A DNA stretch of 64,000 bases from positions 2,232,001 through 2,296,000 of the forward strand of contig OZ251233.1 in assembly GCA_965240325.2 (NCBI GenBank), read 5' to 3'. Each line of letters begins with the position of its first letter. Position 1 is the first letter of the stretch. Under the pieces are notes generated by a model that saw only the letters and a program-made list of their open reading frames with translations, made no database searches and was not told the origin of the DNA. Made by a program: the position numbers and the translations under genes. Source of the stretch: Rebecca billardiae RCC1528 (taxonomy: Eukaryota > Protista > Haptophyta). Positions 7,911-58,162 of this stretch are shown one piece after another.

Positions 7911-8768
7911 GACCCGTTGCACGGGTGAGTAACCGTGAGCGTATGAAAAAACGACAAGCGTATGAAATCTCGCGGTTTTGTCGCTCGCGCTGCCGCATGG
8001 CTGACGTCCGCGCCGATCCGAGCGCAATGGTGCATTGCGAAGCCGATTCGCAATGCACCAATCCAATCCGCATGTCAATCGACCCAACCGTCGCTGAGAA
8101 CGAACGACAAAACCCAGGGCAGGTGTCCACCACGAAGCCACGCCGCGCGCGCGCTGGCAGCGTGAGCCGGCGCGGTTGCAAAGGGTTGCCCAAAGGCAGA
8201 GAGATCAGCCAATGCGGCTACCTTCGGCAAGCACGCCACCTCAGCGTCAGCATCGGGTGGGGCCGTGAGGATACATGCCCTTGGATGCGGCTCCAGCCAA
8301 ACGGCTCTCGACGCGGGGAGCCGCCATCGGCCGCGAGCGCGTACACGGATACACGTGCTGTCCTCGTGAACGAGGATTCAGGAGACGAGGCGCGGCCCGC
8401 GATGCGCAGGCAAGACCTAGGGAGTGGCTCACGCTTTGATCGCGGGTACGGGTACAGAAGGCGTGCGCACGCAACCACACCGCCTTCGTGAAGCGCGTGG
8501 GCAAGCTGCTGAAGCTCTCACGATGCGCGCTTACTTCTCATCTCCGTGCGCTCGCCGACCGCTCACGCTGCCTTCCGCGCGGCGGACCTGGGAAACCTGC
8601 CACCTGGCGCGCACGACGCAGCGCGTAACGCGGAAGGTGGTAGATCTGCTGCCACGCTCCCGCTGCCGCCGCCGGCGGCGGCAGCGGCATGCCCACGATG
8701 CGGCGACGGTGCTGATGACTATCACTGCCAAAGTGTCGTTTTTTCGGCGCTCACGCGTGCAACGGGTC
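7911..8768. mobile_element. Non-autonomous TIR element (GACCCGTTGCA ends, 4-bp TSD GACA), family copy 1
   Basis: Left end gacccgttgcacgggtgag...aaaaaacgaca; right end tgtcgttttttcggcgctcacgcgtgcaacgggtc; both flanks gaca; related copy at 35731-36586. Confidence 0.8.
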
Positions 8769-17737: not shown

Positions 17738-19163
17738 TGGTCACCGTGCGACGCCATGCAGGCCGGACGTGAGCTTTCGGCTGAGGGAGGCCACCGCGCT
17801 GGCGAAGTGGCGAGCGACAGTCCGGTGCGCGCCGATTTCGGCGATCGAGTTCAGAAGGCCCGAGGGCCGAGGCCGCGCCAAATCTTGCGTCGCGTGCGAT
17901 GGCGCTTCCCGCCCGCGAGACACCTCGTGACGAGGGCCTTTCCGCACCGAACCCGACGTGCGGCGGTGGATCGCGCGAGGTGGCTGACGTGCGCAGCGCT
18001 TGATGCTATGGCCAGTGCGAGCGCTCGACGTGCAAGTCGGGCGAGGACCGCCCCAGGTCGCACGATCGTGTCGACGCGCCGAGCGTACCTTCAAACGCGT
18101 CGACTTTGGCCCCCGTTCGACCTGCACGCGAGACGACGAGGGCAGCAATCTGAAATCGCAAATCGGGCGAAAACACCCTCGGGAGTCCGCGCGCGATGTC
18201 CGCGCCGGCGTTGGATCTGGCGCGCGCCGCCCGCGGGCTCCGCGCCATCCGGTCACTCTTTTTCGGCCGAGCGTCCCCAGTGGTCTACTGTACTGTCCTC
18301 GTGGCCACCATCCGCAATGGAGTGTGACCCGCCCGCCGCTGACCAGGCGATGGGCGTGCCGGCGGGGGAGGGTTCGACGATGGCGCGCGCAGTGGTGGAC
18401 GAGACGGCGAGACTCGTCGACCGCGTGCGCGCCCGCGTCGACCCGGTCTGCAGCTTCACCGTGGATGTGTGGGTCACCGGCGACGGTGGCTGGCGCGCCA
18501 AGGTGTTCGTGTCGGGCAACTCCCCTGGGGTCGTGGACGGTGCGCTGACCCCACAGGGCGGGGCTGGGCATCTGAACAGGAGCCGTGGCCCCACCCCCAG
18601 CGCACCGGCCCGCGGGCCGGTCCCACCTCGCAAGGGGGGGGCAACCACTTCAGCCGCCGTGCTGTCGGTCGTCCCCGCAAAGTATGCGCGCGCTGAGCGC
18701 AATCCGAGGCGCGCATCCCAGGAAGGCGTGAGCCAGGTCACAGTACGGTCGTAGCCGCGCGTCATGGTGCCCATCGGCTTCACGCGCATGCGTGCCTCTC
18801 CGCTATCTCGGCAGGCAAGGCGCCCATGGCCATGTCTCTGGCTGAATGCGGCGGCGGCGCAAGCTCGCGCTCGCGTGGGCCTCAAGCTGACCTTCGAGGT
18901 GCGAGGGCGCAAAGCGCCGCGCCACGCGCAAGCTACAGTAGTTCACGGCCTCGTTACCGCCCCGCTGCGTCCCATCGGAAGCTCTACTGGACATCGCGCG
19001 GCCTCGCCCTGGCGGCGGTAGGCGCGAGCGAGGTGGCGGCGGCGGCGGCGTTCTGCTGAGTCCGGGACCGGGCGCCGCCCCAGCGTGCGCCAACCGGAAA
19101 CGCGGCTGAGCCGCGTTTTGGATTGGGCTGGCAAATCCCAGGAGGTCTGGCCGTGTCTTTGTC

Positions 19164-20261
19164 ATGGCGTCGTCGCATGGACGATCCTTGGCAACCGCGC
19201 TACTCCTACTACTCGGCAGCGCGTCGGCGGGACGATCGCGGAGCCTTGTCTACGTGCACATTGGGAAGGCCGGTGGCGGGAGCGTGGACCAAGGGCTCAG
19301 GCGGCTGTGCATCAGCGGCCTCCTGGATGAGGTGATCTCCGTACACACGTGCAAAGTTTTGAAGGAAGAAATGCACACGCCCGGGAAGAAGAGTTCCTGC
19401 ACCACCGTGGAGGTCAGCGGCCCGCTCTTCGCGAGCAATCACACCGCCTGCCCCAGCTTCAACAAGACCAAGCGTAGCAGGAGTACGCCCCTCTTCTCCC
19501 GTGCCGACATGCTCGCCCGGAGGGCCCAGCATGCGCCCATCTTGCTGTGGGTCCGAGACCCAGTCGCTCGGCTCGCCTCGTGCTGGGGCAACTTTATGGC
19601 GCTCGCCGATCGACCCAACCTGTCGAAGGACACGATCGCGCACTGGGTGCACCGCGCCGAGAAGTTCGTGAACAAGACTCTCCCCGCCATCCAGCATCGC
19701 ATCCCTGGGCTCGAGCACCTGAGCGAGCTGCACGTGCGCACAGACCTCCAGAGCCTGCTGGAGGTGATCGCCGCCAGCCCCCGCGCACACGAGGCGATGC
19801 AGCAGGTCTTCGATAACGTGCCGCACGCCCGCACCGGCATCGCGCACTACATGGGCGGCACGGAGGGGCTCGAGCGCGTGCGCGCACGGCTGGCATTCGT
19901 CGGTACGACGGAGCATTTTGAGGAGAGCTGGAAAGTGATGATGCCTGCGCTCTCGCGTGTGTTTGGCTGGAGTGAACGGCACGGGCCAAGCTCCGTGCCC
20001 GCTGCGCCGTTGCTTAAGCACGTGCACGTCTCAGCGAGAGGGCACGCGCGCAGTGCGCTGTCTGCGCCCTCCGTCCGCTTTCTGCGCGACCACTTTGCGG
20101 CTGACCTCGAGTGCATCGCTCTGCTCTCAAAGTGGGAGCTGCTTCCGCGCTCGTATGCGGTCGCGGTGGGGGCGGTTACGGACGCGTCTACGACGTACAC
20201 CTACGAGGCGTCGTCCCTGCGAATGAGGCCCGACGACGCGCCCAAGGCCGACGGGCAGTAG
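19164..20261 (+). CDS. Secretory-pathway sulfotransferase family protein
   Basis: Signal peptide; PAPS-binding motifs YVHIGKAGGGSV and VRDPVARLAS; FVGTTEHFEES; F..D.E C-terminal motif. Confidence 0.8.
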   Translation: MASSHGRSLATALLLLLGSASAGRSRSLVYVHIGKAGGGSVDQGLRRLCISGLLDEVISVHTCKVLKEEMHTPGKKSSCTTVEVSGPLFASNHTACPSFNKTKRSRSTPLFSRADMLARRAQHAPILLWVRDPVARLASCWGNFMALADRPNLSKDTIAHWVHRAEKFVNKTLPAIQHRIPGLEHLSELHVRTDLQSLLEVIAASPRAHEAMQQVFDNVPHARTGIAHYMGGTEGLERVRARLAFVGTTEHFEESWKVMMPALSRVFGWSERHGPSSVPAAPLLKHVHVSARGHARSALSAPSVRFLRDHFAADLECIALLSKWELLPRSYAVAVGAVTDASTTYTYEASSLRMRPDDAPKADGQ

Positions 20262-29087: not shown

Positions 29088-29506
29088 GCCAGCATAAAGG
29101 ATGGCCGCTTCTGAACCTGTGATGGAGGCCCTTCCGCACGCGCCCGTGCGCGGCGACGGGTGGGGTGCGGGGCTGGCGGGCGTCGGGCGGTCGCCTCGAG
29201 AGGGTCGAGGAGTCCCCCGCCCAAGCGAGGGCCACCGCCTCAGTCAGCCTCTCCGCGTCGCGCGCGTCGTCGGCGCGCGGGTGCTTTCGAGCCCTTGTGA
29301 AGGCACGCCGAGGTACGAGCAGTCGGCCACAGTGCGCTGATGCGGCCGCGGCCACTGGCGGAGCAGCCGCCAGCTCTCGCCCTTTTCTCAGTTCTTGAAG
29401 AACGGATTTGTTCTGCTCAAGTTTGTGGTACACGACTTGAGACTGGTGGCTTGCCTTTCACCTTCGGTACCAGACGTGGCGCGAAGCGGTCATCCTTTAT
29501 GATGGC
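29088..29506. mobile_element. Candidate MITE with ~24-bp imperfect TIRs
   Basis: gccagcataaaggatggccgcttc ... gaagcggtcatcctttatgatggc; no clear TSD. Confidence 0.5.
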
Positions 29507-29539
29507 TGCCGCGCGGGCTCGGCGGGATTAGGGTGGAGC

Positions 29540-30451
29540 ATGGTCGCCCCCGCCCTGCTGGTGCTGTGCGCTGCGAGCGCGGCTGTCAGCCCGGCGTCGT
29601 CGACGGGCATGGCACGCCGGCTGATCTACGGCACTGCCTGGAAGAAGGAGCGCACGACGGAACTCGTCGTGCAGGCGCTGCGCGCGGGCTTCCGCGCGGT
29701 GGACACCGCGTGCCAGCCGCGGCACTACCACGAGGCTGGCGTGGGCGAAGCGCTCGCGATCGTGGCCGAGCAGGATGGGCTGAAGCGTGAGGAGATCTTC
29801 CTGCAGACCAAGTACACGCCCGAGCGCGGGCAGGACGCGTCGTCCATCCCGTACGACCCGTCCCTGCCGCTGGGCGAGCAGGTGCGCGCCTCGTTTGGCG
29901 CGTCGCTCGCCAACCTGCGCACGGACTACGTCGACTCGCTGCTGCTGCACTCGCCGCTTGAGACGCTGGACGAGACGGTGGAGGCGTGGCGCGCGATGGA
30001 GGCGCTCGTGCGCGACGGCGCGTGCCGGCAGATCGGCATCTCCAACCTGTACGAGCTGGGCGCGCTGCAGCAGCTGTGCGAGGCCGTGGCCGTGCCGCCC
30101 GCGGTCGTGCAGAACCGGCTGTACGCGGACACGGCGTACGACGCACAGCTGCGCGAGTGGTGCCACGCGCGCGGCATCGGCACGCAGACGTTCTGGACGC
30201 TCACCGCCAACCCCGAGGCGCTGCGCTCCGAGCCCGTCCGCGCCATCAGCGCCTCGCGCGGCTGCAGCGCGCAGCAAGCCTTCTTCCTGTACGTGCTCGG
30301 CCTCGGCGCCACGCCGCTCACAGGCACCACCTCGGCCGCGCACATGCGCGACGACCTCGACGTGCTCAGCATGGCTCCGCTGGCCGTGGACGAGCTCGAG
30401 GCAGTCTCCGAATGGCTGGCGCGGCATGCGGCGGAGGCAGGGACGGTGTAG
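29540..30451 (+). CDS. Aldo/keto reductase with N-terminal signal-like leader
   Basis: IYGTAWKK, GFRAVDTA.QPRHY.E..VGEAL, REEIFLQTKYT, LRTDYVDSLLLHSP, IGISN. Confidence 0.92.
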   Translation: MVAPALLVLCAASAAVSPASSTGMARRLIYGTAWKKERTTELVVQALRAGFRAVDTACQPRHYHEAGVGEALAIVAEQDGLKREEIFLQTKYTPERGQDASSIPYDPSLPLGEQVRASFGASLANLRTDYVDSLLLHSPLETLDETVEAWRAMEALVRDGACRQIGISNLYELGALQQLCEAVAVPPAVVQNRLYADTAYDAQLREWCHARGIGTQTFWTLTANPEALRSEPVRAISASRGCSAQQAFFLYVLGLGATPLTGTTSAAHMRDDLDVLSMAPLAVDELEAVSEWLARHAAEAGTV

Positions 30452-31852
30452 TTTCTGATGATGCACTTACTCGGTCGCAGCCGGGCGTGAGTCGGGCTGC
30501 TGCTTCATCCATCACGTCCACGACGACTCGACGAGTACGACCACGAGTCCATCATCGTCAGTCGTCACGACTACTCTATATATACCGTTGCTCTGTCACG
30601 ACGTCGTCGTCGGATGTGATCGCCCGAGTCACTAGACAATAATATATATATGTATTAAATATATTATTGCTGCTATGATATATAGCTACTACCCGCCAGT
30701 ACTCACTGTTACTCGCTATATATATACGTACTGCTATCTATATATATAATTATAATTGCGGCCGTCCTGGCGCGGGTCCACCGCGCCGTCAGGCGTCCCG
30801 CCGACTCGGCGTCCTGACGAGACTCGAGAGCAGCAGTGACGACGAGCGACGCGATACGTACTTCTGCTTGACGATATATCGCGATTCCGCCCCGCTAACG
30901 CTTCGGTGACTGCTCGTCAATCATGAATATAACTCGCTTGCCGGGCGGACTGAAACTCGGCCACTACAGAGTGGCGACTGCTACTCGGGCCCGCCAGGCC
31001 CAGCCAGGGGCAGGTAGTTACGGCCCGTTATCAGCCGCCCGGCCCCGGGCCTGCCGCCGCCGCGGTGCCCGCCAGCCCGCGGCCGGGCGCGACCGGCGCG
31101 AGCCGCGTTGACTACGACCGCGCATCGAGTCACTAACTACCGCCGCGTGATTGCCGCGGCGGCCGCCGTCTGAGTCAGCAGCAATAAACTTAAAGTAGAA
31201 CAGTACAAACCGTGACACGCGCCCGAGTGAGACAGCGCGCCTGATGCCGCCTGTCAATGTCATTGCCATCGGTTACCGGCTACCGCGGGCGGGCCTTCGG
31301 AGGCATCCGCCGAACTTGCCAACTCCTAAGGCAATAAATAATAACTCTACTCTATCTGAGTCTCTCTCGGCTCTCTCTTATTTGCTGACTCTCCGTCGAT
31401 CAGTCTCACAGTCACTGAGTCACTCACTGAGTCACAGTCTTCGGAGTCCGTGCTGACCGTGCTCTCTTATGACTGATTGACTCTCTCGTCTCTCTGTCTC
31501 TCTCTATTATGCATGCGCATCCGAGAATGCTCGCTGCGTTATGCTGCGAGTGCGCGCATATATCATCATCAATGATCATCATCATCGTCGATCTGCGACT
31601 GCGTGCTGCGATCAGTGAATCACTCCGACTCGCGCACGCCTCGGACGACAAGAGACGACAGCCTGGCGGCGCGGGCCTAGTCGCACGCGCCGACTGCCAC
31701 GGACCGCGTGACGAGCGGCCCCTCGCGGCCGGCGACCGCGGCGGCCGCCGGGCGTCGGCCGATACGTTCTCATGTCACCGATGGCCGCCGCCGATCCCGG
31801 ATCCGCGAACGACGCCGGACTCGCCGGAGCGCCGGAGCGGGAGAGCGCCTCG

Positions 31853-33190
31853 TCATGGGCTGGGCGTCGCGCCCGCCGACGAGCGCGCCTGCTGCTCCCA
31901 GTAGTGCACCGGGTCGCCCCACTCGCCCCACGCGATCTCCTTGCCCGCGGTGCGCACGCGCAGCTCGAGGCAGCCGCGGCACTGCGTCGCGGTCTCGTCG
32001 AGGCACGGCTTGCCCTCGTACAGCTGGTAGTTGGCGCGCGTGTCGGTGGGCGTGAGGATCGGCATCAGGATGTTAGCGCCGCGCCGCAGCGCGACCTCGC
32101 GCCCGTCGGCGCGGATGGCCTGGAGCGCGGTGGTCGCGGCAACGTTGACGTCGCCCATCGTCAGCCGCGCCAGCGCGACCATCCTGGTCGTGCGCTCGAA
32201 GACCCACTCCTTGTACCGCTCCTTGCTCCACCCCTTGGCCTGCAGCTCCTCCATAAACATCTCGCCGACCGGCGTGCCCGCCTCGTACACGTACGGGCCC
32301 ATGCCCACCATGTCGATGGACTCGCGGCGGAACCAGAGGAGGTCGCGCGCCTGGTCGGCGGTGGTCTGCGTGGGCAGCCCGATCATCACGCCCGTGCCCA
32401 GCTGGAACCCCAGCTCCTGCAGCTGCTTGAGGCAGCCCGCGCGCGTGTGCCACGAGTGCAGCTCGTCGGCTGGGTGGATGCGCGCGTACAGCTCGGGGTT
32501 GGACGTCTCGATGCGCAGCAGGTAGCGGTGCGCGCCCGCGTCGAGCAGCGCGCGGTAGTGCGTGAGCGGCAGCTCGCCCACCGAGAGCGCGACCCCCAGC
32601 CCTTTCCGGCCGCACGGCTGCGCCGGCCTGCCCGACGCCTCGTCCATCGCCGTGGTCTCGGCGCGGATCGTGCGGATCACGTCGCACAGGAAGTGCAGCC
32701 GCTTCTCGCTGAGCAGCTCGCCGCTCTGCAGCATCACGCTGCCGTACTGGTGCTCGTGCGCCCACTTGGCGATCTCCACGATGGCGTCCTTCTCCATCGT
32801 GTACCGCTTCACCTCCGCCATCTTCTTGCGGATGCCGCAGTAGCCGCAGTTCTTGCGGCACACGTTCGAGAACTCGATCAGCCCGCGGAAGTGGACCTTG
32901 CCCTTGTAGAAGCGGTCGGTCACGGAGTCAGCCTGCAGGTACAGCGCCTTGAGCAGCTTCTCGTCCGTCGACTCGAGCAGCGTCTCCAGCGCGGGCTGGT
33001 CGAGCTCGACCGTCTCACCCGGCTCGAGGCTTTCCTTGCCCACAAACGCGGCGAACGGGCGCGTGCGCGAGCGGATGACGTCGGGCGCGAGCGGCGGCAG
33101 CGGCGGCACGGCGAGCGAGCGGGTGCGGCCGGCGAGGCGCCACTTGAGCGCCTCGCGCGGCGCGCGGCGTGACCAGCCGGCGCGCAACAT
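31853..33190 (-). CDS. hydE: [FeFe]-hydrogenase H-cluster maturase HydE (radical SAM)
   Basis: RGLIEFSNVCRKNCGYCGIR (CX3CX2C), YLLRIETSNPELY, GTGVMIGLP.QT, DMVGMGPY, ATTALQ, GANILMP, YQLYEGKPC and CX7CX2C; intronless. Confidence 0.95.
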   Translation of the reverse strand: MLRAGWSRRAPREALKWRLAGRTRSLAVPPLPPLAPDVIRSRTRPFAAFVGKESLEPGETVELDQPALETLLESTDEKLLKALYLQADSVTDRFYKGKVHFRGLIEFSNVCRKNCGYCGIRKKMAEVKRYTMEKDAIVEIAKWAHEHQYGSVMLQSGELLSEKRLHFLCDVIRTIRAETTAMDEASGRPAQPCGRKGLGVALSVGELPLTHYRALLDAGAHRYLLRIETSNPELYARIHPADELHSWHTRAGCLKQLQELGFQLGTGVMIGLPTQTTADQARDLLWFRRESIDMVGMGPYVYEAGTPVGEMFMEELQAKGWSKERYKEWVFERTTRMVALARLTMGDVNVAATTALQAIRADGREVALRRGANILMPILTPTDTRANYQLYEGKPCLDETATQCRGCLELRVRTAGKEIAWGEWGDPVHYWEQQARSSAGATPSP

Positions 33191-33486
33191 CCCGCGCGAT
33201 GGACGCCGCCTAGCCGGTCAGTTGACCACGGCGCGGTCCTGGCTCGAAGTGGCGAGCCGTGCGGCTCGCGCTCTTACACGGGCATCGATTCATTCGACCG
33301 TAATGTATGCGCAGCGGGCCAATCAAGGGCGGTCGGCTGGCGGAAACTTCACAGCAGGGTGGGATTTGACCACGGAATGGCCCTGAATCTGTGAGGTTTG
33401 GACGTTTGGTGCGGCCGACCTGGCTCCAACGCGAACCAATCGGAAAGGCCTGCTTGGTCAGTCACAGAGCGGGCACGAACGGTCCG

Positions 33487-35097
33487 ATGTCGGCGTACGC
33501 GCTCCGCCGGGCGGCGCTCATGCTCGGCGCGCGGCGGCTGCCGGCGGCGGCGTGCGCGCGCGCCGGCCGGAGGGCGCTGTCCATGGCGGCGAAGCCGCAG
33601 GAGCTCAGCTGGGCCGACGCGAAGAAGATGCCCTCGCCGTCCGCGGGCAAGAAGAAGCCGGGCCCGGTGAAGGGCAGCGACGTGCCGCGGCTCAACATCG
33701 GCATCTTCGGCGCGATGAACGCGGGCAAGTCGCTGCTGATGAACCGCATCACGCGGCAGGAGACGTCGATCGTCGACTCCACGCCGGGCACGACCGCGGA
33801 CACGAAGATCGCGCTCCTCGAGCTGCACGACATCGGGCCCGTGAAGCTGTTCGACACCGCGGGCGTGGACGAGACGGGCGCGCTCGGCGAGAAGAAGCGC
33901 GCGAAGACGCTGGCGAGCCTGAAGGAGTCGGACCTGGCCGTCGTCGTGATCGACGCGAACGCGCTCGGCGCGGGCCGCGCGCAGCAGCTCAGCTGGGAGC
34001 GCGAGCTGCTCGAGGCGGCCGCGCACGGCGGCGTGCTCCCACTGCTCGTCGTGAACGCCAAGCGCACGCAGGTCGACGCGGCCGCGGTCGAGGCGACGCG
34101 CGCGGCGCTGTGCGACGGGCTCGGCGCCAAGGCCGCCGAGGGCGCCGCCGCGCGCGGCGCCGCGCTCGCGTACCAGCCCTCCGACTTCGCCGACGCGCCC
34201 GCGCTCGCGGTCGACCTCGCGGACGAGCGCGAGGCGATCCGCGCGCTCACCGCCTTCCTGCAGAGCAACGCGGCGCGCGTCAAGGCGTTCATGCCGCGCG
34301 CGCTGCCGGAGCGGTACCTGCGGCCCGACGCGGGCGTGTTCCTCAACATCCCGATGGACGCCGAGACCCCCTCGATGCGCCTCCTCCGGCCGCAGGCGCT
34401 CGTGCAGGAGGACGCGATCCGGCACTGGGCCACGACCGTCTCTTACCGGATGGACCTCGGCGCGGCGCGCGGCGCGGACGCGGACGCGCGCGACAAGGAG
34501 AAGGCGCGGTTCCAGCGCGCGCTCCGCGCGGCGATCGAGGCGTGCCCGCCCGACGCGCCGAAGATCCTGATCACCGACTCGCAGGCCATGGACGTCGTGC
34601 ACCCGTGGACGCTCGACGAGTCCGGCGCGCCGCTGATCGACGTGACGACGTTCTCGATCGCGATGATGCACCGCATGAGCGGCGCGCGGCTGCCGCTCTT
34701 CGCCGAGGGCATGCGCAAGTTCATGCAGCTCGCGCCGGGGGACCGGGTGCTGATGGCGGAGGCGTGCAACCACAACCGCATCACCGACGTGTGCAACGAC
34801 ATCGGCATGGTGCAGATCCCGCAGATGATCGGCGCGCAGACCGAGGGCATCGAGATCGAGCACGCGTTCGGCCGCGAGTTCCCCGCGCTCGACAAGGGCC
34901 TGGGCAGCTACGACCTGGTGATCCACTGCGGCGCGTGCATGATCGACCACCAGAAGGTGCGCGCGCGCATCGCGGACGCGCTCGAGGCCGGCGTGCCCAT
35001 CACCAACTACGGGCTGCTCATGTCGTACGCGTACAACGGCGCGGCCGCCCTCGAGCGCGTGCTCCAGCCGTGGGAGGACAGCCACGGCGCGCACTGA
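33487..35097 (+). CDS. hydF: [FeFe]-hydrogenase H-cluster maturase HydF (GTPase/scaffold)
   Basis: IGIFGAMNAGKS, SIVDSTPGTTAD, DTAG, ITDSQA, TTFSI, EACNH...DIG..QIP, IHCGACM, VPITNYG; intronless. Confidence 0.95.
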   Translation: MSAYALRRAALMLGARRLPAAACARAGRRALSMAAKPQELSWADAKKMPSPSAGKKKPGPVKGSDVPRLNIGIFGAMNAGKSLLMNRITRQETSIVDSTPGTTADTKIALLELHDIGPVKLFDTAGVDETGALGEKKRAKTLASLKESDLAVVVIDANALGAGRAQQLSWERELLEAAAHGGVLPLLVVNAKRTQVDAAAVEATRAALCDGLGAKAAEGAAARGAALAYQPSDFADAPALAVDLADEREAIRALTAFLQSNAARVKAFMPRALPERYLRPDAGVFLNIPMDAETPSMRLLRPQALVQEDAIRHWATTVSYRMDLGAARGADADARDKEKARFQRALRAAIEACPPDAPKILITDSQAMDVVHPWTLDESGAPLIDVTTFSIAMMHRMSGARLPLFAEGMRKFMQLAPGDRVLMAEACNHNRITDVCNDIGMVQIPQMIGAQTEGIEIEHAFGREFPALDKGLGSYDLVIHCGACMIDHQKVRARIADALEAGVPITNYGLLMSYAYNGAAALERVLQPWEDSHGAH

Positions 35098-35730
35098 GGA
35101 GGCGGAGGGAGGCCGGCTGGCGGCTGAGGGCGGGGTCGCCGCGCCGCGCGGTCCGGTGCAGCGGCGGCGCACACCGGCCAGCATGCGCAGGCCACGCCGC
35201 GCGCTCACCCACGCCCGGTTGGCACCGCCGGTCCACGGGCACGGAGCGCGCTTGCCGTGGTTACTGGACTATGCGCGGTCCGACGGTGTGACCGGCCCCT
35301 GCGGTGGATGGGCAGTCGCCAGTCGGCGCGGGCCAGCCTCTGAGTCTGACTGAGTCGGAGTCGACTGTAGACCTCAGTCTGCCGTGTTACTCAGCTCGTC
35401 CAGTGATGAGTCACGCGTTAAATGAAACCGTAGGGCCCCGGCTACGGCCGCTACGGCCACGGGCGCGGTCTCGGGTCTCGGCCCGACTCTGTCTCTGTAG
35501 TCTGTTACTCTATCTGCTGTACTTGTAGCCCGCCTGGGCGCCGTATAGAGCAGTCGCGTACTGATGACGTACGCCAGACGTACGTGCCAGCAGGCCCAGC
35601 AGCCACCGCCGCCAGGCGCCACGCCGCGGCACTGATGCGGTTGCCACGAGCCGCGCCGAGCCGGCACGCCGCACGGGCCGCGAGGCCGCGGTCCCAATTC
35701 CCATGGGCTGTGACGAGTGTGAAGTGTGCT

Positions 35731-36586
35731 GACCCGTTGCACGGGTGAGTGACCGTAGGGCGGTGAAAATGCGACGTACCGGTGAAAATACGGTTTTGCA
35801 ACTAGCGCTGGGCGATGGCTGCCGGGCGCGACGAGCCGAGCGGATTGGTGCACGGGGAATCCAATTCCCCGTGCACCAATCCAATCCGTTCGTCGCCAGG
35901 TGCTGCCGTTGCCGAGATCGAGCTGCAAAACCCTCAGCAGGTGGTCAAGAGAAGGAAACGGGGAGGGCTGTCGCAGCGCGCGCGCCGCGGTGGGAAGAGA
36001 GAAGGGCTTGCCTCCCAACTGCAGCTTTGGCAGCGTTCCCTCTTGCGGCAGTGGAAGCCGACGACGAGGAGGATGACGACGCAGCTGCTGATGACTGCTG
36101 CGAAGCAGCAGCGGTGACACTCTGCGGTGCACAGCTGCCACCGCGCGCGCCGCACGCGACTCGGACTCGGGTGATGGCGACAGCAGCACAGCAGTCCTCA
36201 TGAAGACGATGAAGCTGCGTGCACGGGTGCACGAGGTGGCAGGCGAAAGCGCGCCGACGAGACAGCTCTTGACACGCCTGAGCGCACGCCCATGCTCGCC
36301 GAGCGCGAGCGCTGCAAGTGCAACTACAGTGCGCGCCGCGCGGCAAGTGGATGCAGGCTGTACTCGGCGGCACTGCGTCCGCGGCCATCGTCTCTTCACT
36401 TGTCGAGGCTGCTGCTGCGGCGGGCCGGGGGCACTACCCGGCACGCGCGGCGTAGCGCGCTAGACGGAAGGTGATGGTAGACGCACTGTCACGCTCCCGC
36501 CGCCGCCGCCGCCGCCTGCAAGACTGTATCGTCACTCTAGGCCGCCGAAGTGTCGTTTTTTCGGCGCTCACCGCTTGCAACGGGTC
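35731..36586. mobile_element. Non-autonomous TIR element (GACCCGTTGCA ends, 4-bp TSD TGCT), family copy 2
   Basis: tgct|gacccgttgcacgggtgag ... tgtcgttttttcggcgctcaccgcttgcaacgggtc|tgct; 856 bp versus 858 bp for copy 1. Confidence 0.82.
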
Positions 36587-36774
36587 TGCTTCAGATGGGC
36601 ATGACTCAATGAGACCGTGACTGTGAGCCGCTCCGCGCGCACGCGGCCCTCGACGCCATCGCCAGCTTCATCAGCTTGGCCGTTGGGCCCGCCGCCGCCG
36701 CCGGCCGCGTCGCCCCGCCGCCCCGCGCACTGTGACTGGTGAATGGCTTAGCGACGCTACCGGAAGGCGGCTGC

Positions 36775-37551
36775 TTATGCTGACGAGGCGCCTCTGCTTC
36801 CCACCAAGAAGGTGAGGGCAAAACGCGACTGCCACTCGTCGAGGACGTCGAGCTGACGCTCCGTGAATGCACATGCCGGCCGGGCGAGCTGCCGATCCAC
36901 CGCCGCCAGGGCGCGCAGCACGGTGAGCAGCGCGCGCACGGCCTCCACGTGCTCATCGCCCGCCTGTGCGCCCGCCTTGGCCAGGCGCTTGAAGCCAGCG
37001 GCCTTGGCGCCGTGCAGCGGCCCTGTCTGCAGCGCCTGCTGCGAGACGAGGAAGACGCGCGTGGCGAGCTCCTTTGAATCGCGCAATGCGCCCTCATCGC
37101 CGAGCGCGCGGCACAACCGCGCGTGCGCGTCGATGGCTGGGAGCCAGGCGCGCACGGCGTCTGCCGGCCGCATAGCGCATGTTGCGCTCAGTGACTGCTG
37201 CACGCTGTCAATCGCACGATGCGCGGCGCGTTCGCGTCGACGCGCCTCTGCCCCGTCCACGTCATCCACCTCGGCCTCGACGGTGTCCGCATGCGCCTCT
37301 GCGCGGCTGTCGCTGAGGGGCATCGGTGGAGGCATCGTGGGAGCGCCGCCACTGTCCTCGGCTGCGGGCGCGTGCGCGACCGCGCCATTGTCGAGGGCAT
37401 GCACGTCCTCGTCGGCGTCAGCGGGTGCCCCTGCTTCTGTGCGCCGTCGGCTGCGCTGCGCCTGCAGCCCCTCGCGCTTCTGACGCCCCGACGCTGGCTT
37501 GCGGCGCAGGCCGGCGAATGGGTGGCGCACACCATGCGAGCGATCCGCCAT
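36775..37551 (-). CDS. Hypothetical protein (258 aa), divergent from hydG
   Basis: ATG-initiated, protein-like composition with a helical C-terminal half (QQALQTGPLHGAK..FKR...FTERQLDVLDEW); function unrecognised. Confidence 0.6.
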   Translation of the reverse strand: MADRSHGVRHPFAGLRRKPASGRQKREGLQAQRSRRRTEAGAPADADEDVHALDNGAVAHAPAAEDSGGAPTMPPPMPLSDSRAEAHADTVEAEVDDVDGAEARRRERAAHRAIDSVQQSLSATCAMRPADAVRAWLPAIDAHARLCRALGDEGALRDSKELATRVFLVSQQALQTGPLHGAKAAGFKRLAKAGAQAGDEHVEAVRALLTVLRALAAVDRQLARPACAFTERQLDVLDEWQSRFALTFLVGSRGASSA

Positions 37552-37866
37552 TGTACGACTGCTTTACTCCTGCCGCTACTGTTTTACCCCCCCGCGGTGA
37601 GTTCGTGAGCCGGTTGGGAGCCAGCCTGACGCCGATTCGAGATCAAATAATGAAGTTCGGTCGGGCTCCGACGGGTTTGGTTGCCGCTTCGCACCAAACC
37701 CCGGCGGGCGCACGCGATTGGCCGACGAGCCAGCTGCTCACGGCAACTCCTTTTCTGATAGGGCTGCCGCTCAGGCACGTTTGCACGAACTTACTACTGC
37801 GTCGTCAATCGGCCGCGTGCGTCGCCGCCGCGCGGCCAACGTCCCGGTCCAACCGCAACCGGCTTC

Positions 37867-39579
37867 ATGTGGCGGCGCACGAGCACAGCGCGGGCGGCGG
37901 CGGCGGGCGCGGCGCGGCGGCGCGCCGGCGGTCTGCTGGTGGGCAGGGGTCGGCGGTTCTCGGGGCTCACGCGGCAGCAGGAGCACGGCTCGAAGTGGAG
38001 TAAAGAGCTCGACCTCGAGGCGTCGGCCAAGGTGCCGCCCGCGAGCGAGATCATCGACGAGGCCGCCATCTTCAAGGCGCTCGAGGAGACGAAGGAGGCG
38101 GCGAAGGACGTCAACCACGTGCGCGCCGTGCTCGCGAAGGCGCTCGAGCGCGCCACGCTGCAGAAGGTCGAGGGCGAGCTCACCTCCGAGTACGTGCAGG
38201 GGCTGGACGCGACCGAGGCGGCGACGCTGCTCAACATCGACTCGAGCGACAAGACGATGATGTCCGAGCTGTTCCGCACGGCGCTGGACATCAAGGAGCG
38301 GATCTACGGGAACCGCATCGTCCTCTTCGCGCCGCTCTACCTCGCCAACTACTGCGTCAACTCGTGCACGTACTGCGCGTTCCGCTCGAAGAACAAGCAC
38401 ATCAAGCGCTCGCACCTCTCGGACGAAGAGATCCAACACGAGGTGGAGACGCTCGAGCGGATGGGGCACCGCCGGCTGCTGCTGCTCACGGGGGAGGACC
38501 CGAAGTACACGTTCGACGACTTCCTCCGCGTGGTGAGCGTCGTCGCCGGCGTGCGCTCCGAGCCGTGCGGCAACATCCGGCGCATCAACGTCGAGATCCC
38601 GGCGCTCTCGATCTCCGACTTCAAGCGCCTCAAGGCGACGGGCGAGATCGGCACGTACACGCTGTTCCAGGAGACGTACCACCGCGAGACGTTCAAGCGC
38701 GTGCACCCGTACGGCCCCAAGTCCGACTTCGACTACCGGCTGCAGACGATGGACCGCGCGCAGATGGGCGGCATCGACGACGTCGGGATCGGCGCGCTGT
38801 TCGGGCTGTACGACTACCGCTTCGAGGTGCTCGCGATGCTGCAGCACGCGGGGCACCTGGAGAGCCACTACGGCGCGGGGCCGCACACGGTGTCGATCCC
38901 GCGCATCCGCCCCGCCGACCAGGCGCCCGAGTCGATCCGCCCGCCCATGCCCGTCTCGGACCCGGACTTCCTCAAGCTGGTCGCGGTGCTGCGGTGCGCG
39001 GTGCCGTACACGGGCATGATCCTCTCCACGCGCGAGAGCCCGCAGATGCGGCGCAAGCTGCTGCACCTGGGCATCTCGCAGATGTCGGCGGGCTCGAAGA
39101 CGGACGTGGGCGCGTACGCCAAGGGCGACCAGAAGACCGAGCTCGAGACCTTCGGCACCTCGCCGCACCTAGACCTGCTGGACTCGCTCGACGGGCACAT
39201 TGACGAGGCCGCGACCGCGCCCGTCGACGGCGCCGAGCTCAAGGGCCAGTTCTCGCTGCTCGACCACCGCACGCTCGACGAGATCGTGCGCGACCTGCTC
39301 GAGCTCGGCTTCGTGCCGTCGTGGTGCACGGCGTGCTACCGCCTCGGGCGCACCGGCGCGAGCTTCATGAAGATCGCGAAGAAGGGCGACATCCACAACT
39401 ACTGCCACCCGAACGCGCTGCTCACGCTGCGCGAGTACGTCGAGGACTACGCGTCCGACGACACGCGCAAGAAGGCCGAGGCGGTGATCGAGTCGGAGAA
39501 GGGCACGCTCTCGCGCACGGCCGCGCTCGACCGCAAGCTCGCGAAGATCATGCACGGCGAGCGTGACCTCTACTTCTGA
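37867..39579 (+). CDS. hydG: [FeFe]-hydrogenase H-cluster maturase HydG (radical SAM tyrosine lyase)
   Basis: GNRIVLFAPLYLANYCVNSCTYCAF, GNIRRINV, YTLFQETYH, PYTGMILSTRE, PSWCTACYRLGRTG..FM...CHPNALLTL (CX2CX22C), GERDLYF; intronless. Confidence 0.97.
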   Translation: MWRRTSTARAAAAGAARRRAGGLLVGRGRRFSGLTRQQEHGSKWSKELDLEASAKVPPASEIIDEAAIFKALEETKEAAKDVNHVRAVLAKALERATLQKVEGELTSEYVQGLDATEAATLLNIDSSDKTMMSELFRTALDIKERIYGNRIVLFAPLYLANYCVNSCTYCAFRSKNKHIKRSHLSDEEIQHEVETLERMGHRRLLLLTGEDPKYTFDDFLRVVSVVAGVRSEPCGNIRRINVEIPALSISDFKRLKATGEIGTYTLFQETYHRETFKRVHPYGPKSDFDYRLQTMDRAQMGGIDDVGIGALFGLYDYRFEVLAMLQHAGHLESHYGAGPHTVSIPRIRPADQAPESIRPPMPVSDPDFLKLVAVLRCAVPYTGMILSTRESPQMRRKLLHLGISQMSAGSKTDVGAYAKGDQKTELETFGTSPHLDLLDSLDGHIDEAATAPVDGAELKGQFSLLDHRTLDEIVRDLLELGFVPSWCTACYRLGRTGASFMKIAKKGDIHNYCHPNALLTLREYVEDYASDDTRKKAEAVIESEKGTLSRTAALDRKLAKIMHGERDLYF

Positions 39580-40357
39580 GCGGGGGCACGCCCGCGCCTC
39601 CGTGCTCGCTCTGGCCGCTCGGGGCAACTCGAGTGAGTGACAGTCAGCTCGGCTCGGTGCGGCTCTGATGAGACAGATCGTTGTTCTCTCAAGAGTCACG
39701 CGCCCCGGGCGATGCCCGCCCCGGGGCTACCGGGCACCCCGCGGCCCGGCGCGGCCGCGGGTCCGCCGAGGGCACGGGCCCGGACGGCAGGCCGACGCCG
39801 CCACGGCCGGCATTTACAGCCATACAGCCGACAAATGATTTTCGGAATATATAATAAAAATGAATTTAATTTTAGCGGCGTAATATTTAGTAATGAGTAA
39901 AGTCGCGTCCTCATCATCATCAGTAATATATTCGTCATCCCGGATCAATATTGCATCGTCCGGAGCGGCAGACTGGCAGCGCGTGCGGCGTGATTGGCGT
40001 CGCGCCGTCCGCGCCGCCGGCTTGAAAACTGCCACGGCGCGGCTAGGACACGCCCCAAGTAGTTCGGCCCGCGACCAAGGACCCCAGTTTCTCCCGGGTA
40101 ACAATTCCTCTAACTATTACTCACCCCCGTCGCGCCCGTGAAAAGTGTTACAGGCCGAGCGTAGCAGTAACATGTAACACTCTCACGCCGGACTCACCCG
40201 GACTGCGGGTGTCTGACCGAGCCACGCCGCCTGACTAAACCCTGGCTGAGCACACTGTCAGCCATCACTTTCACTTGAGACCGTCGGTCTCGGATTCTCG
40301 CGGCCCGTTGCCGGCCAGTCCGGGTCCGGGTCCGGGGCCGGGCGGGTGGCGCTGGGC

Positions 40358-44436: not shown

Positions 44437-46669
44437 CTACTTGGAGGCGTTGTACTCGGCGGTGAACTTGGTCATCATCTCCTTGATCGAGTCGTCGGTG
44501 CCCTTGGAGAGCGCGCCCTCCGCCTTGATCGTGTCGATCAGGCCCGGGTGCGAGGCCTTGGTGTGCGCGAGCAGCTGGTCGAGGAACGGGCCGACCTGCG
44601 CACACGCGCACACGGACACAGAGAAGAGAGCAGGAGGCGCGCGTGAGGCCGCGAGCGCGCGGCGGCGGCGCGCGGCGCGTGCGCGTGCGCGTGCGCTCAC
44701 CTCCGAGATCTGCAGCTTGTCGAGGAAGCCGCGCGTGCCCGCGTAGATGAGGATCACCTGCTCCTGGAAGGGCAGCGGCACGTACTGCTTCTGCTTGAGC
44801 AGCTCCGTCAGCCGCGCGCCGCGGTTGAGCAGGTACTGCGTGGCCGCGTCGAGGTCGGAGCCGAACTGCGCAAACGCCGCCATCTCACGGTACTGCGCGA
44901 GCTCGAGCTTGAGCGTGCCCGCGACCTGCTTCATGGCCTTGCGCTGCGCCGCGGAGCCTGTGCGTGCGCGGCAAGCGCGGGTCGGCGGCGTGGGCCGGGC
45001 GCGCGCGGCGCGATCAGCCTCCGCCTCTGCGCGCGCGGCGCTGCCGGCGGCGGCGGCGCGCGGGCGCGGCGCCGGGCGCGGCGCCGGGCGCGGCGCCGGG
45101 CGCGCGCGGCGAGGGCGGCGGCGCGCGGGCGCGCACCGACGCGCGAGACGGAGAGACCGACGTTGATCGCCGGCCGGATGCCGCGGTAGAAGAGCTCGGC
45201 CTCGAGGAAGATCTGCCCGTCCGTGATCGAGATCACGTTGGTGGGGATGTACGCGGACACGTCGCCCGCCTGCGTCTCGATCACGGGCAGCGCGGTGAGC
45301 GAGCCCGCGCCAAACGCGTCTGACATCTTGGCCGCGCGCTCGAGGAGGCGCGAGTGCAGGTAGAAGACGTCGCCGGGGTAGGCCTCGCGGCCGGGCGGCC
45401 GGCGGAGCAGCAGCGACATCTGGCGGTACGCGACCGCCTGCTTGGAGAGGTCGTCGTAGATGATGAGCGCGTGCATCCCGTTGTCGCGGAAGAACTCGCC
45501 GATCGTGCAGCCCGAGTAGGGCGCGATGAACTGCAGCGGCGCCGCCTCCGAGGCGGTGGCGGCGACGATGCACGAGTACTCCATCGCGCCCGCCTCCTGC
45601 AGCGTCTTCATCAGCTGCGCCACCGTCGAGCGCTTCTGCCCGACCGCGACGTACACGCAGTAGAGCGACTTGGACTTGTCGCCCGCCGCGTTGATGCTCT
45701 TCTGGTTGATCATCGCGTCGATGGCGACGGCCGTCTTGCCCGTCTGCCGATCGCCGATGATCAGCTCGCGCTGCCCGCGGCCGATGGGCACGAGCGAGTC
45801 GACGGCCTTGAGGCCCGTCTCCATGGGCTCGTGCACCGACTGCCGCGCGATGATGCCCGGCGCCTTCACCTCGATGCGCTGGCGCGTCACCTCGCCCGCG
45901 ATCGGCCCCTTGCCGTCGACCGGGTTGCCGAGCGCGTCGACGACGCGGTTGAGCATGCCCAGGCCGACGGGCATGTCGATGATCGCGCCGGTGCGCTTGA
46001 CCGTGTCGCCCTCCTTGATCTCGCGGTCGTTGCCGAAGACGACGATGCCGACGTTGTCGTTCTCCAGGTTGAGCGCCATGCCCTTGATGCCGCTGTCGAA
46101 CTCGACCATCTCACCGGCTTGCACTTTGCTCAGCCCGTGCACGCGCGCGATGCCGTCGCCGATGGCGAGCACCTTGCCCACCTCCGTCACCTCCGAGGCG
46201 CTCGAGAACTCGGCGATCTTCTTCTCGATGATCGACGAGAGCTCCGACGCCGACGGCTGGTTGGCCTTGGACGACTCTGCGCGGCGCGGCGCGGCGCGGC
46301 GCGATTCGAGGCGGCGGCGGCGCGGAGCCGGCGCGCGGCGCGCGTGCGCGGGGGAGTTCAGCCGGCGGCGAGCGAGCGGCGGCACGCGGGAGCGTGGTGG
46401 ATTTCACGGCGCCCCCCACCCGCGCGGCGTCGCGCGGCCTCGCGGCCGCGCCACGAGCTGGCGCACGCCCCGCGGCCGCGCGAAATCAACGCCCAGACCG
46501 CCGCCGCGCGGGGCGGCGGCCGACCCACGGCGCGCGTGCTCGGGCGCGCACCCGCTGGCCGGTTCGCCCGGAAGTGGCGCGCGCTGCATGCCGCGACGAC
46601 ACGCGTCGCAGCCCGTGCCTCGGGCACGACGCTGCGCCCGAGGGCGGCGAGCGAGCGCTGGGCCAGCAT
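44437..46669 (-). CDS. ATP1: Mitochondrial F1-ATP synthase subunit alpha, nuclear-encoded; introns 46277-46551, 44958-45136, 44596-44700
   Basis: [63 protein letters not shown]; Arg/Ala/Ser presequence [12 protein letters not shown]... Confidence 0.97.
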
Positions 46670-57025: not shown

Positions 57026-58162
57026 ATGGCGACGACGCGGCAGCGGATGCGGCTGGCGTGCATCGCGGCGGCCGTGCTCGCGGCGGCAGTGAGATCGAGT
57101 GCGCTCGCGGCGCGCCCCGCGCCGCAGGCGCCCCTCCGCCGCGTGGCCAGTGGCAGGTGCGCGCTCGCGCGCCGCCGCGCCGGCTGCCCCGCGGCGCGCT
57201 GCGTGCCGCCGCCGCTCAGCCTCGGGGCGTGCGCGCGCGCCGATGACGCTCGCGCCGCGCCGCCGCGCTCGCGCAGGCGCGCGCAGCAGCGCATGATGCC
57301 TCGCGGCGGCGTGAAGGTGCCGTACAAGGTGCCCAACTCCGAGTTCTACCAGTGGGTCGGCGTGTACGAGCGCATGGCGCGCGAGCGCATCCTCTTCCTG
57401 CGCTCCGGCCTCGACGACAACGTGGTGAACGGGATGATCGCGACGCTGCTCTACCTGGAGAACGAGGACCGCTCGTCGCCCGTGCAGCTGTACGTCAACG
57501 TGCCCGGCTCGCTCACCAAGGCGGGCCTCGCCCTCTTCGACACGATGCGCTCGATCGCGTTCCCGATCGCGACGCTCAACCTGGGGATGGCTGCCGACAT
57601 GGGCGCGTTCGTCGTCGCGGCGGGGGACAAGGGGAAGCGCTCGTCGCTGCCGAACGCGCGGTTCGTGCTGTGCGCCCCCGCGATCCGCGGCGTGCCCGGC
57701 GAGCAGCCGCCCATCATGCAGGCCGAGGACATCGGCCGCGAGGTCGGCGAGGTGCTGCGCGACCGACGCAGGCTGGCGGGCGCGCTCGCCGAGCTGACGG
57801 GCCAGACGGAGGACGCGGTGCTCAAGGTGCTCAAGCGCGACGCGTACTTCGACGCGAAGGAGGCGAAGGCGTTTGGGCTCATCGACAACATCGTCGCGCC
57901 GAAGACGGGCGCCAAGACGGCGGCCAGCGACGACGACGTGCGCGCGCGCGCGCGCGCCCTCTCGCGCGCGCGGCGGCGCGCGCCCAGCCTGCCCTGCGCA
58001 CACGCCACACGCTCACTCGGGACACGCGCGCCGCGCCCCGCCGCGCAGTTTGGCTTCGGCAACTTCGGCGCGAACCCGCCCGACGCCGCGGCGATGGGCG
58101 CGGGCGGCGCGCGCGCGGGAGACGGCGGCGGCGACTCGGACTACACGCCGCAGCTCGCGTAG
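57026..58162 (+). CDS. clpR: Plastid-targeted non-catalytic Clp protease subunit (ClpR-like); probable introns 57157-57276, 57938-58048
   Basis: RERILFL, LLYLE, LYVN.PG, GKRSSLPNARF, RD.YF.A.EAK.FGLID; the catalytic Ser position reads AADMG and the His position reads VLCAP; signal peptide plus transit-like leader. Confidence 0.85.
   Translation: MATTRQRMRLACIAAAVLAAAVRSSALAARPAPQAPLRRVASGRCALARRRAGCPAARCVPPPLSLGACARADDARAAPPRSRRRAQQRMMPRGGVKVPYKVPNSEFYQWVGVYERMARERILFLRSGLDDNVVNGMIATLLYLENEDRSSPVQLYVNVPGSLTKAGLALFDTMRSIAFPIATLNLGMAADMGAFVVAAGDKGKRSSLPNARFVLCAPAIRGVPGEQPPIMQAEDIGREVGEVLRDRRRLAGALAELTGQTEDAVLKVLKRDAYFDAKEAKAFGLIDNIVAPKTGAKTAASDDDVRARARALSRARRRAPSLPCAHATRSLGTRAPRPAAQFGFGNFGANPPDAAAMGAGGARAGDGGGDSDYTPQLA

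Follow-up and report, generated by a model that had tools for sequence, protein, structure and literature searches.

A Linked hydE, hydF, and hydG Maturation Cluster in a Nuclear Genome Assigned to the Pelagophytes

Hydrogenase Maturation Genes at the Locus

A stretch of 64 kb from contig OZ251233.1 (positions 2,232,001 to 2,296,000 of the forward strand; assembly GCA_965240325.2, deposited as Rebecca billardiae RCC1528), hereafter called the window, was analyzed computationally and found to carry three genes, hydE, hydF, and hydG, that encode the complete set of maturases for [FeFe]-hydrogenase. According to the list of open reading frames (ORFs) of the window, these genes together span 7.7 kb and are arranged as follows:

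31853-33190, minus strand: hydE, radical S-adenosylmethionine (SAM) H-cluster maturase, 445 aa with an N-terminal leader of ~45 aa, ATG at 33190
33487-35097, plus strand: hydF, GTPase/scaffold maturase, 536 aa from the first ATG, enclosing ORF opening at 33391
37867-39579, plus strand: hydG, radical-SAM tyrosine lyase and Fe(CO)2CN synthon maturase, 570 aa

As a family assignment, the locus is routine. In profile searches, HydE scored 267.2 bits against the equivalog model TIGR03956 (cut-off 254.6), with PylB as the runner-up family at 77 bits, and HydG scored 517.6 bits against TIGR03955 (cut-off 312.15), its match to the ThiH profile (292 bits) staying under the ThiH cut-off of 380. HydF contains the Pfam domains PF18133 HydF_tetramer (117.9 bits, cut-off 22.6) and PF18128 HydF_dimer (24.3 bits, cut-off 23.4), together with the GTPase domain PF01926 MMR_HSR1. 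The best matches in the PDB are 4WCX for HydG (463.7 bits, including the C-terminal cluster domain, which aligns to 4WCX residues 366-480), the Thermotoga maritima HydE for HydE (226 bits, residues 48-426), and 3QQ5, the T. neapolitana HydF, for HydF (129 bits).

The ligands of the iron-sulfur clusters are intact in all three proteins. HydE has the radical-SAM motif C111x3Cx2C (C111/C115/C118) and an auxiliary C396x7Cx2C, and HydG has an N-terminal C163x3Cx2C (C163/167/170) and a C-terminal C487x2Cx22C (C487/490/513), the C-terminal CX2CX22C cluster domain being a feature of HydG that ThiH does not possess. HydF carries the P-loop GAMNAGKS at residues 75-82, the G3 motif DTAG at 123-126, and the [4Fe-4S] ligands C427xH...H480CxxC484; the P-loop and C427, H429, H480, C481, and C484 are invariant in the HydF alignment, and the G4 motif is reduced to N190, which is invariant in all of the aligned HydF sequences (11/11). 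Aligned to orthologues derived from transcripts, the three ORFs run colinearly without large gaps, and the genes are therefore intronless and full length. An original prediction, made from the letters alone, had described a complete, intact, and intronless set with its Fe-S ligands kept and with hydE and hydF standing head-to-head 296 bp apart; the ORFs, profiles, motifs, and colinearity bear this out, as do the start codons at 33190 and 33487.

Host Lineage and Origin of the Cluster

The closest relatives of the three proteins are found in pelagophytes. HydG is 82% identical to its homologue in a strain of the MMETSP collection, 80% to that of Aureoumbra lagunensis, and 78% to that of Chrysophaeum taylorii, and the next matches fall to 63-65%. 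HydE shares 71% identity with Chrysophaeum (next matches 53-56%), and HydF shares 78% with the MMETSP relative and 66% with Chrysophaeum (next matches again 53-56%), excepting a HydF fragment from Logan short-read data that reaches 74% identity over 71% of the query and, in the HydF tree, clusters together with the window protein and that of the MMETSP relative.

Trees were built by quick maximum-likelihood searches under LG+C20 with support from the Shimodaira-Hasegawa-like approximate likelihood ratio test (SH-aLRT). All three proteins fall in strongly supported pelagophyte clades with Aureoumbra, Chrysophaeum, and the MMETSP relative (SH-aLRT 100, 100, and 99). In the HydG tree, the window sequence pairs with the MMETSP relative (99) within the pelagophytes (100), which are sister to the diatoms Seminavis and Amphora (97), and this pelagophyte and diatom group sits inside a large assemblage of algae and other eukaryotes. 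The pelagophyte clade of HydF (99) lies among algal sequences, the named Planctomycetes forming a separate clade (100), and in the HydE tree a split supported at 99 separates the named bacteria from the eukaryotes, with which the pelagophyte clade (100) is placed. Published work likewise recovers the eukaryotic maturases as monophyletic (PMC4989108), in agreement with these trees.

Judged by these protein relationships, the host is a pelagophyte (Stramenopiles, Ochrophyta) and not a haptophyte. A haptophyte host was rejected, every close match being pelagophyte; a review table scores both the haptophyte Emiliania and the reference pelagophyte Aureococcus CCMP1984 as being without HYDA, HYDE, HYDF, and HYDG (PMC8003979).

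The cluster shares the extreme base composition of its surroundings. G+C content of the window is ~70%, and G+C at third codon positions (GC3) is 0.97-0.99 in the hyd genes (0.97 in hydE) and 0.89-0.98 in most neighboring genes, with 0.81 in the ORF at 19110-20261. The neighboring ORFs are plainly eukaryotic and encode WD40, Dus, F-box, GT47 exostosin, aldo-keto reductase, ATP1 (ATP synthase alpha), NGP1 nucleolar GTPase, and ClpP proteins. The placement of the maturases among eukaryotes and algae and their host-like codon usage argue against a recent bacterial transfer, and the sequence evidence suggests that the cluster is nuclear and vertically inherited and was not recently acquired by lateral transfer.

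The hydG gene is under purifying selection, with a dN/dS of 0.12 against the cDNA of a relative, and where transcript contigs from relatives differ from the window, the listed differences are at third codon positions. The genes are expressed in relatives: their transcriptome assemblies contain mRNA-sized hydF and hydG contigs with ~87-90% nucleotide identity to the window, and the cDNAs of the MMETSP relative are complete. Read mapping recovered the genes only in relatives' transcript contigs and in one low-coverage, DNA-like run.

Several statements of the original prediction can be judged from these results. Its eukaryotic nuclear setting stands, given eukaryotic neighbors with the same extreme GC3. 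In the phylogenies of the three maturases for which it called, HydE, HydF, and HydG are all on the eukaryote or algal side and within the pelagophytes. The "haptophyte-type alga" gives way to a pelagophyte, with clade supports of 99-100 and Emiliania scored as hyd-free, and the suggestion that the genes were "possibly acquired laterally" fails in any recent sense, in view of the host GC3, the algal side of the trees, and a linkage common to ochrophytes.

The nearest outgroup of the pelagophyte HydF proteins is P0254, a protein of 674 aa from JGI metagenome/transcriptome data that starts with sequence of the HydE C-terminus and looks like a HydE-HydF fusion, whereas pelagophytes and Seminavis keep separate hydE and hydF genes. 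Among diatoms, the full trio of hydE, hydF, and hydG is present in the raphid pennate Seminavis robusta, and at least HydG in Amphora coffeaeformis. Thalassiosira pseudonana has HydA and no maturases (PMC10407231), and the distribution in diatoms is therefore patchy.

Linkage of the Maturase Genes in Other Algae

The maturase genes are also neighbors in other ochrophytes, in different arrangements:

This window: hydE (minus) and hydF (plus) head-to-head with 296 bp between them, hydG (plus) 2.8 kb downstream
Chrysophaeum taylorii CTAYLR_003954-003956: hydF (minus), 74 bp, hydG (plus), 327 bp, hydE (minus); 4.7 kb, consecutive locus tags
Seminavis robusta: hydF (minus), an unrelated gene, hydE (minus), hydG (plus); within 9 kb
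Close MMETSP relative: hydF (plus) and hydE (minus) convergent on one 3.7-kb transcript contig (L013:97-3687), 441 nt between the stops
Nannochloropsis: cluster of hydA, hydE, hydF, and hydG (PMC3499364, PMC3293424)

The genes of Chrysophaeum and Seminavis are orthologous to those of the window (66-78% identity to Chrysophaeum), and the same trio occupies 4.7-9 kb in both. Each of the full genomic loci keeps one divergent pair, which is E/F in the window, F/G in Chrysophaeum, and E/G in Seminavis; the convergent hydF and hydE of the MMETSP relative have the opposite relative orientation to the head-to-head pair of the window. Apart from the different divergent pair, the window cluster differs from these two loci in that it is stretched by a 2.8-kb spacer with a dispersed repeat and a 258-aa ORF. 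The hyd entries of Chrysophaeum and Seminavis are annotated merely as hypothetical or generic proteins.

Nannochloropsis (Eustigmatophyceae) is likewise an ochrophyte with unfused hydE and hydF and nuclear clustering of the maturase genes, and the HydG leader of N. gaditana is similarly basic and without a signal-peptide core. In Nannochloropsis, however, hydA belongs to the cluster, whereas here it lies neither in the cluster nor in the window, and gene order and orientation differ. The HYDEF and HYDG proteins of the green alga Chlamydomonas reinhardtii have the same biochemical roles and the same ligand motifs, and their genes are placed head-to-head; in the green alga Tetradesmus, HydEF and HydG stand under consecutive locus tags. 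The green-algal system differs in its HydE-HydF fusion and chloroplast transit peptides, whereas in the window hydE and hydF are unfused and oppositely oriented, and the leaders do not fit the complex-plastid type. From this comparison of loci, linkage of hydE, hydF, and hydG is old in ochrophytes and has survived repeated local rearrangement of order and orientation.

Intergenic Regions and Assembly Support

Three further features lie between the maturase genes:

33191-33486, no strand: divergent hydE/hydF intergenic region, 296 bp, presumed bidirectional promoter
35098-37866, no strand: hydF-hydG spacer, 2.77 kb, with a dispersed repeat at 35731-36586 and an ORF at 36775-37551 (minus)
36775-37551, minus strand: 258-aa ORF, GC3 0.79 vs ~0.97, without Pfam or Atlas match

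The region between hydE and hydF, which we presume to act as a bidirectional promoter, contains two CCAATC boxes. The sequence TTGACCACGG occurs there twice, at 33222 and 33366, and nowhere else in the 64 kb analyzed, the chance expectation for a repeated 10-mer in this region being ~0.04. In a conservation check, the TTGACCACGG pair was absent from the Chrysophaeum and Seminavis hyd loci, and no motif common to this region and the region upstream of hydG rose above shuffled controls.

No host-like GC3 periodicity was detected in the hydF-hydG spacer. Its dispersed repeat of ~0.86 kb (35731-36586) resembles a diverged copy at 7911-8768 with 71-93% identity in patches, includes a 141-nt palindrome at 35792-35932, and shows raised depth and loose ends in a low-coverage run; it probably represents an element of mobile or foldback type that inserted between these two genes. 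The 258-aa ORF has 11 weak homologues (best 34% identity, E 1e-11), located on short metagenome contigs that carry no hyd gene, and patches ~85% identical to it occur in the relative's transcriptome; it has no counterpart at the Chrysophaeum hyd locus. A second spacer ORF, of 356 aa, showed neither a Pfam match nor coding periodicity. The possibility that the spacer encodes a fourth, hyd-linked factor was rejected, as the two ORFs are without a family match and the homologues of the 258-aa ORF are not hyd-linked. An Rfam scan of window positions 29-41 kb gave no match.

Two short-read contigs from public runs match parts of the window at 99.9% identity. The contig L002 corresponds to window positions 29473-35760 and links hydE and hydF to the aldo-keto reductase gene, and L003 corresponds to 36557-39832 and carries the spacer ORF and hydG; both may derive from the same strain and are thus not independent proof. 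Elsewhere in the window, the main exon of ATP1 (44931-46403, minus) has no in-frame start codon upstream of the mature N-terminus, and the gene therefore likely has an upstream exon and an intron, as previously stated for it.

Leaders and Subcellular Location

The leaders of HydE, HydF, and HydG are Arg-rich, with seven to nine Arg and Lys and at most one Asp or Glu (7-9 R+K, 0-1 D+E) in residues 1-32. Pattern-level checks identified R-x-[FL]-[AS] motifs of the R-2/R-3 type at positions 24-32 (RSLA, RALS, and RRFS). Compared with bacterial homologues, basic and acid-free extensions are present in all three proteins and in at least three pelagophyte taxa. The maximum Kyte-Doolittle hydropathy over 10 residues is 0.70-1.28 in these leaders vs 2.78 in the leader of ClpP (57026-58162, plus), encoded in the same window. 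The ClpP protein offers a contrast in that its signal-peptide-like hydrophobic leader is followed by an Arg-rich stretch and looks like a bipartite plastid-type presequence.

Import into the complex plastid of ochrophytes requires a signal peptide for the endoplasmic reticulum (ER). Since the three leaders have no signal-peptide core, a plastid location is unlikely, and we infer a mitochondrial (or cytosolic) one. In-frame stops lie upstream of the homologous HydG, HydF, and HydE start codons in the cDNAs of relatives, which makes a missing signal-peptide exon unlikely. On balance, these features somewhat favor the mitochondrion as the place where HydE, HydF, and HydG act, with the cytosol as the alternative.

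The glycine cleavage system is mitochondrial in eukaryotes. H-cluster maturation needs the H-protein of this system (PMC11736057, PMC12752695). In the aerobic amoeba Acanthamoeba castellanii, HydA and HydE-G have been localized to the mitochondrion experimentally (PMC13632651). Acanthamoeba may serve as a working model, being an aerobic eukaryote whose maturases have mitochondrial leaders and whose mitochondrial H2 pathway is induced by hypoxia (PMC13632651), with the differences that localization and activity are experimental there and inferred here, and that a heterotrophic amoebozoan is compared with a photosynthetic stramenopile.

Discussion

By homology, HydG would cleave tyrosine to yield an Fe(CO)2(CN) synthon, HydE would convert this synthon to a di-iron precursor, and the GTPase HydF would be the scaffold that hands the [2Fe] subcluster to an apo-HydA, whose gene would lie elsewhere in the genome. 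Expression of hydE and hydF would proceed from their shared 296-bp divergent promoter region, with hydG situated 2.8 kb downstream behind the inserted dispersed repeat and a small ORF. If the maturases are mitochondrial, they would serve an Acanthamoeba-type route of fermentative H2 formation in the dark or under anoxia, and not Chlamydomonas-type photoproduction of H2. A co-regulated anaerobic H2 metabolism, as proposed originally, is plausible. Taken together, we regard it as probable that the locus represents a vertically inherited nuclear maturase cluster of a pelagophyte, with leaders of the mitochondrial type, that may serve fermentative H2 production.

Several observations weigh against this interpretation. 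The window contains no hydA, pyruvate:ferredoxin oxidoreductase (PFO), or ferredoxin gene, and no hydrogenase-domain ORF was found among its scanned large coding ORFs, in line with the original statement that hydA lies outside the window. For the organism itself, no run recorded as RNA holds the hyd genes. The hydrophobic moment of the leaders is not above that of shuffled controls (p = 0.2-0.97). The trees are quick searches with SH-aLRT as their only support, and in the HydG tree Nannochloropsis falls outside the pelagophyte and diatom clade on a long branch. The short-read contigs break at the repeat (35.76-36.56 kb); because they end at the repeat borders, the hydF-hydG junction is supported by this assembly only, among the assembled sequences, and rests in addition on comparative synteny. 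Finally, HydF scores 252.8 bits against the NCBIfam equivalog TIGR03918, under a cut-off of 325.55 that is tuned for bacterial annotation, and matches it in two stretches; in the alignment the match is split by inserts after the GTPase domain that are common to other pelagophytes. As HydF nests within the HydF tree, we read its low score as eukaryotic divergence and not as an argument against HydF membership.

The alternative that fares best is that the maturases and the hydrogenase are cytosolic and the N-terminal extensions are not functional import signals. The hydrogenase system of Naegleria is reportedly cytosolic, the leaders of Chrysophaeum are very short (~15-25 aa), and, as mentioned above, the amphipathicity of the window leaders does not exceed that of shuffled controls. 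However, basic acid-free extensions with R-3-type motifs are kept in all three proteins of at least three pelagophyte taxa and would be costly to keep if unused, and a cytosolic system is thus unlikely.

Still less probable is a plastid location with coupling to photosystem I via ferredoxin, as in the H2 photoproduction of Chlamydomonas and Chlorella. The host is photosynthetic, and the HydG and HydF trees place pelagophytes among photosynthetic eukaryotes, including green algae; moreover, an uncharged stretch of 18 residues, whose hydropathy peaks at 1.74, occurs at the N-terminus of the HydG leader in the MMETSP relative. Nevertheless, the leaders of the window proteins lack an ER signal peptide, their hydropathy maxima (0.7-1.3) remaining far from that of ClpP (2.78), and the cDNAs of relatives argue against an overlooked upstream exon that could supply one.

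It is very improbable that the cluster is a decaying relic without a working hydrogenase partner. Partial systems do exist in ochrophytes, as shown by the HydA without maturases of T. pseudonana (PMC10407231), and Aureococcus was scored as having none of the hyd genes in a review (PMC8003979), but catalytic ligands intact in three separate genes, the low dN/dS of hydG, and the transcription of orthologues in relatives speak against decay. Recent lateral transfer from bacteria, or contamination of the assembly by bacterial or chimeric sequence, to which the intronless genes, their operon-like proximity, and the horizontal transfer proposed by the Nannochloropsis authors for the hyd cluster there (PMC3499364) might point, is rejected as extremely improbable in view of GC3 values matching those of host genes, the short-read link of hydE and hydF to the flanking aldo-keto reductase gene, the eukaryote-style leaders, the trees (named bacteria separate for HydE and HydF, HydG sister to diatoms), and the expression of orthologues in cultured relatives.

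Returning to the vertically inherited cluster with mitochondrion-type leaders, the literature searched contained no description of pelagophyte genes for [FeFe]-hydrogenase maturation, and the locus and its orthologues show that a complete maturation set exists in a class that includes brown-tide bloom formers. The conserved linkage of hydE, hydF, and hydG with shuffled order across ochrophytes is modestly novel, as are leaders that are not plastid-type and speak against a plastid location. An active mitochondrial system would, if confirmed, help to explain how pelagophytes survive dark or anoxic periods, an ecological link that we suggest, and photosynthetic lineages would join the debate on the age of anaerobic mitochondrial pathways.

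We tentatively propose, as a broader possibility, that pelagophytes, raphid diatoms, and eustigmatophytes may retain an anciently linked cluster that supplies maturases to aerobic mitochondria by import. If this proves true, persistence of the linkage through reshuffling, with a lineage-specific divergent pair, would be a mark of selection to keep the genes co-regulated, and photosynthetic stramenopiles would possess an Acanthamoeba-like, facultatively H2-producing mitochondrion for dark phases or phases in anoxic sediment.

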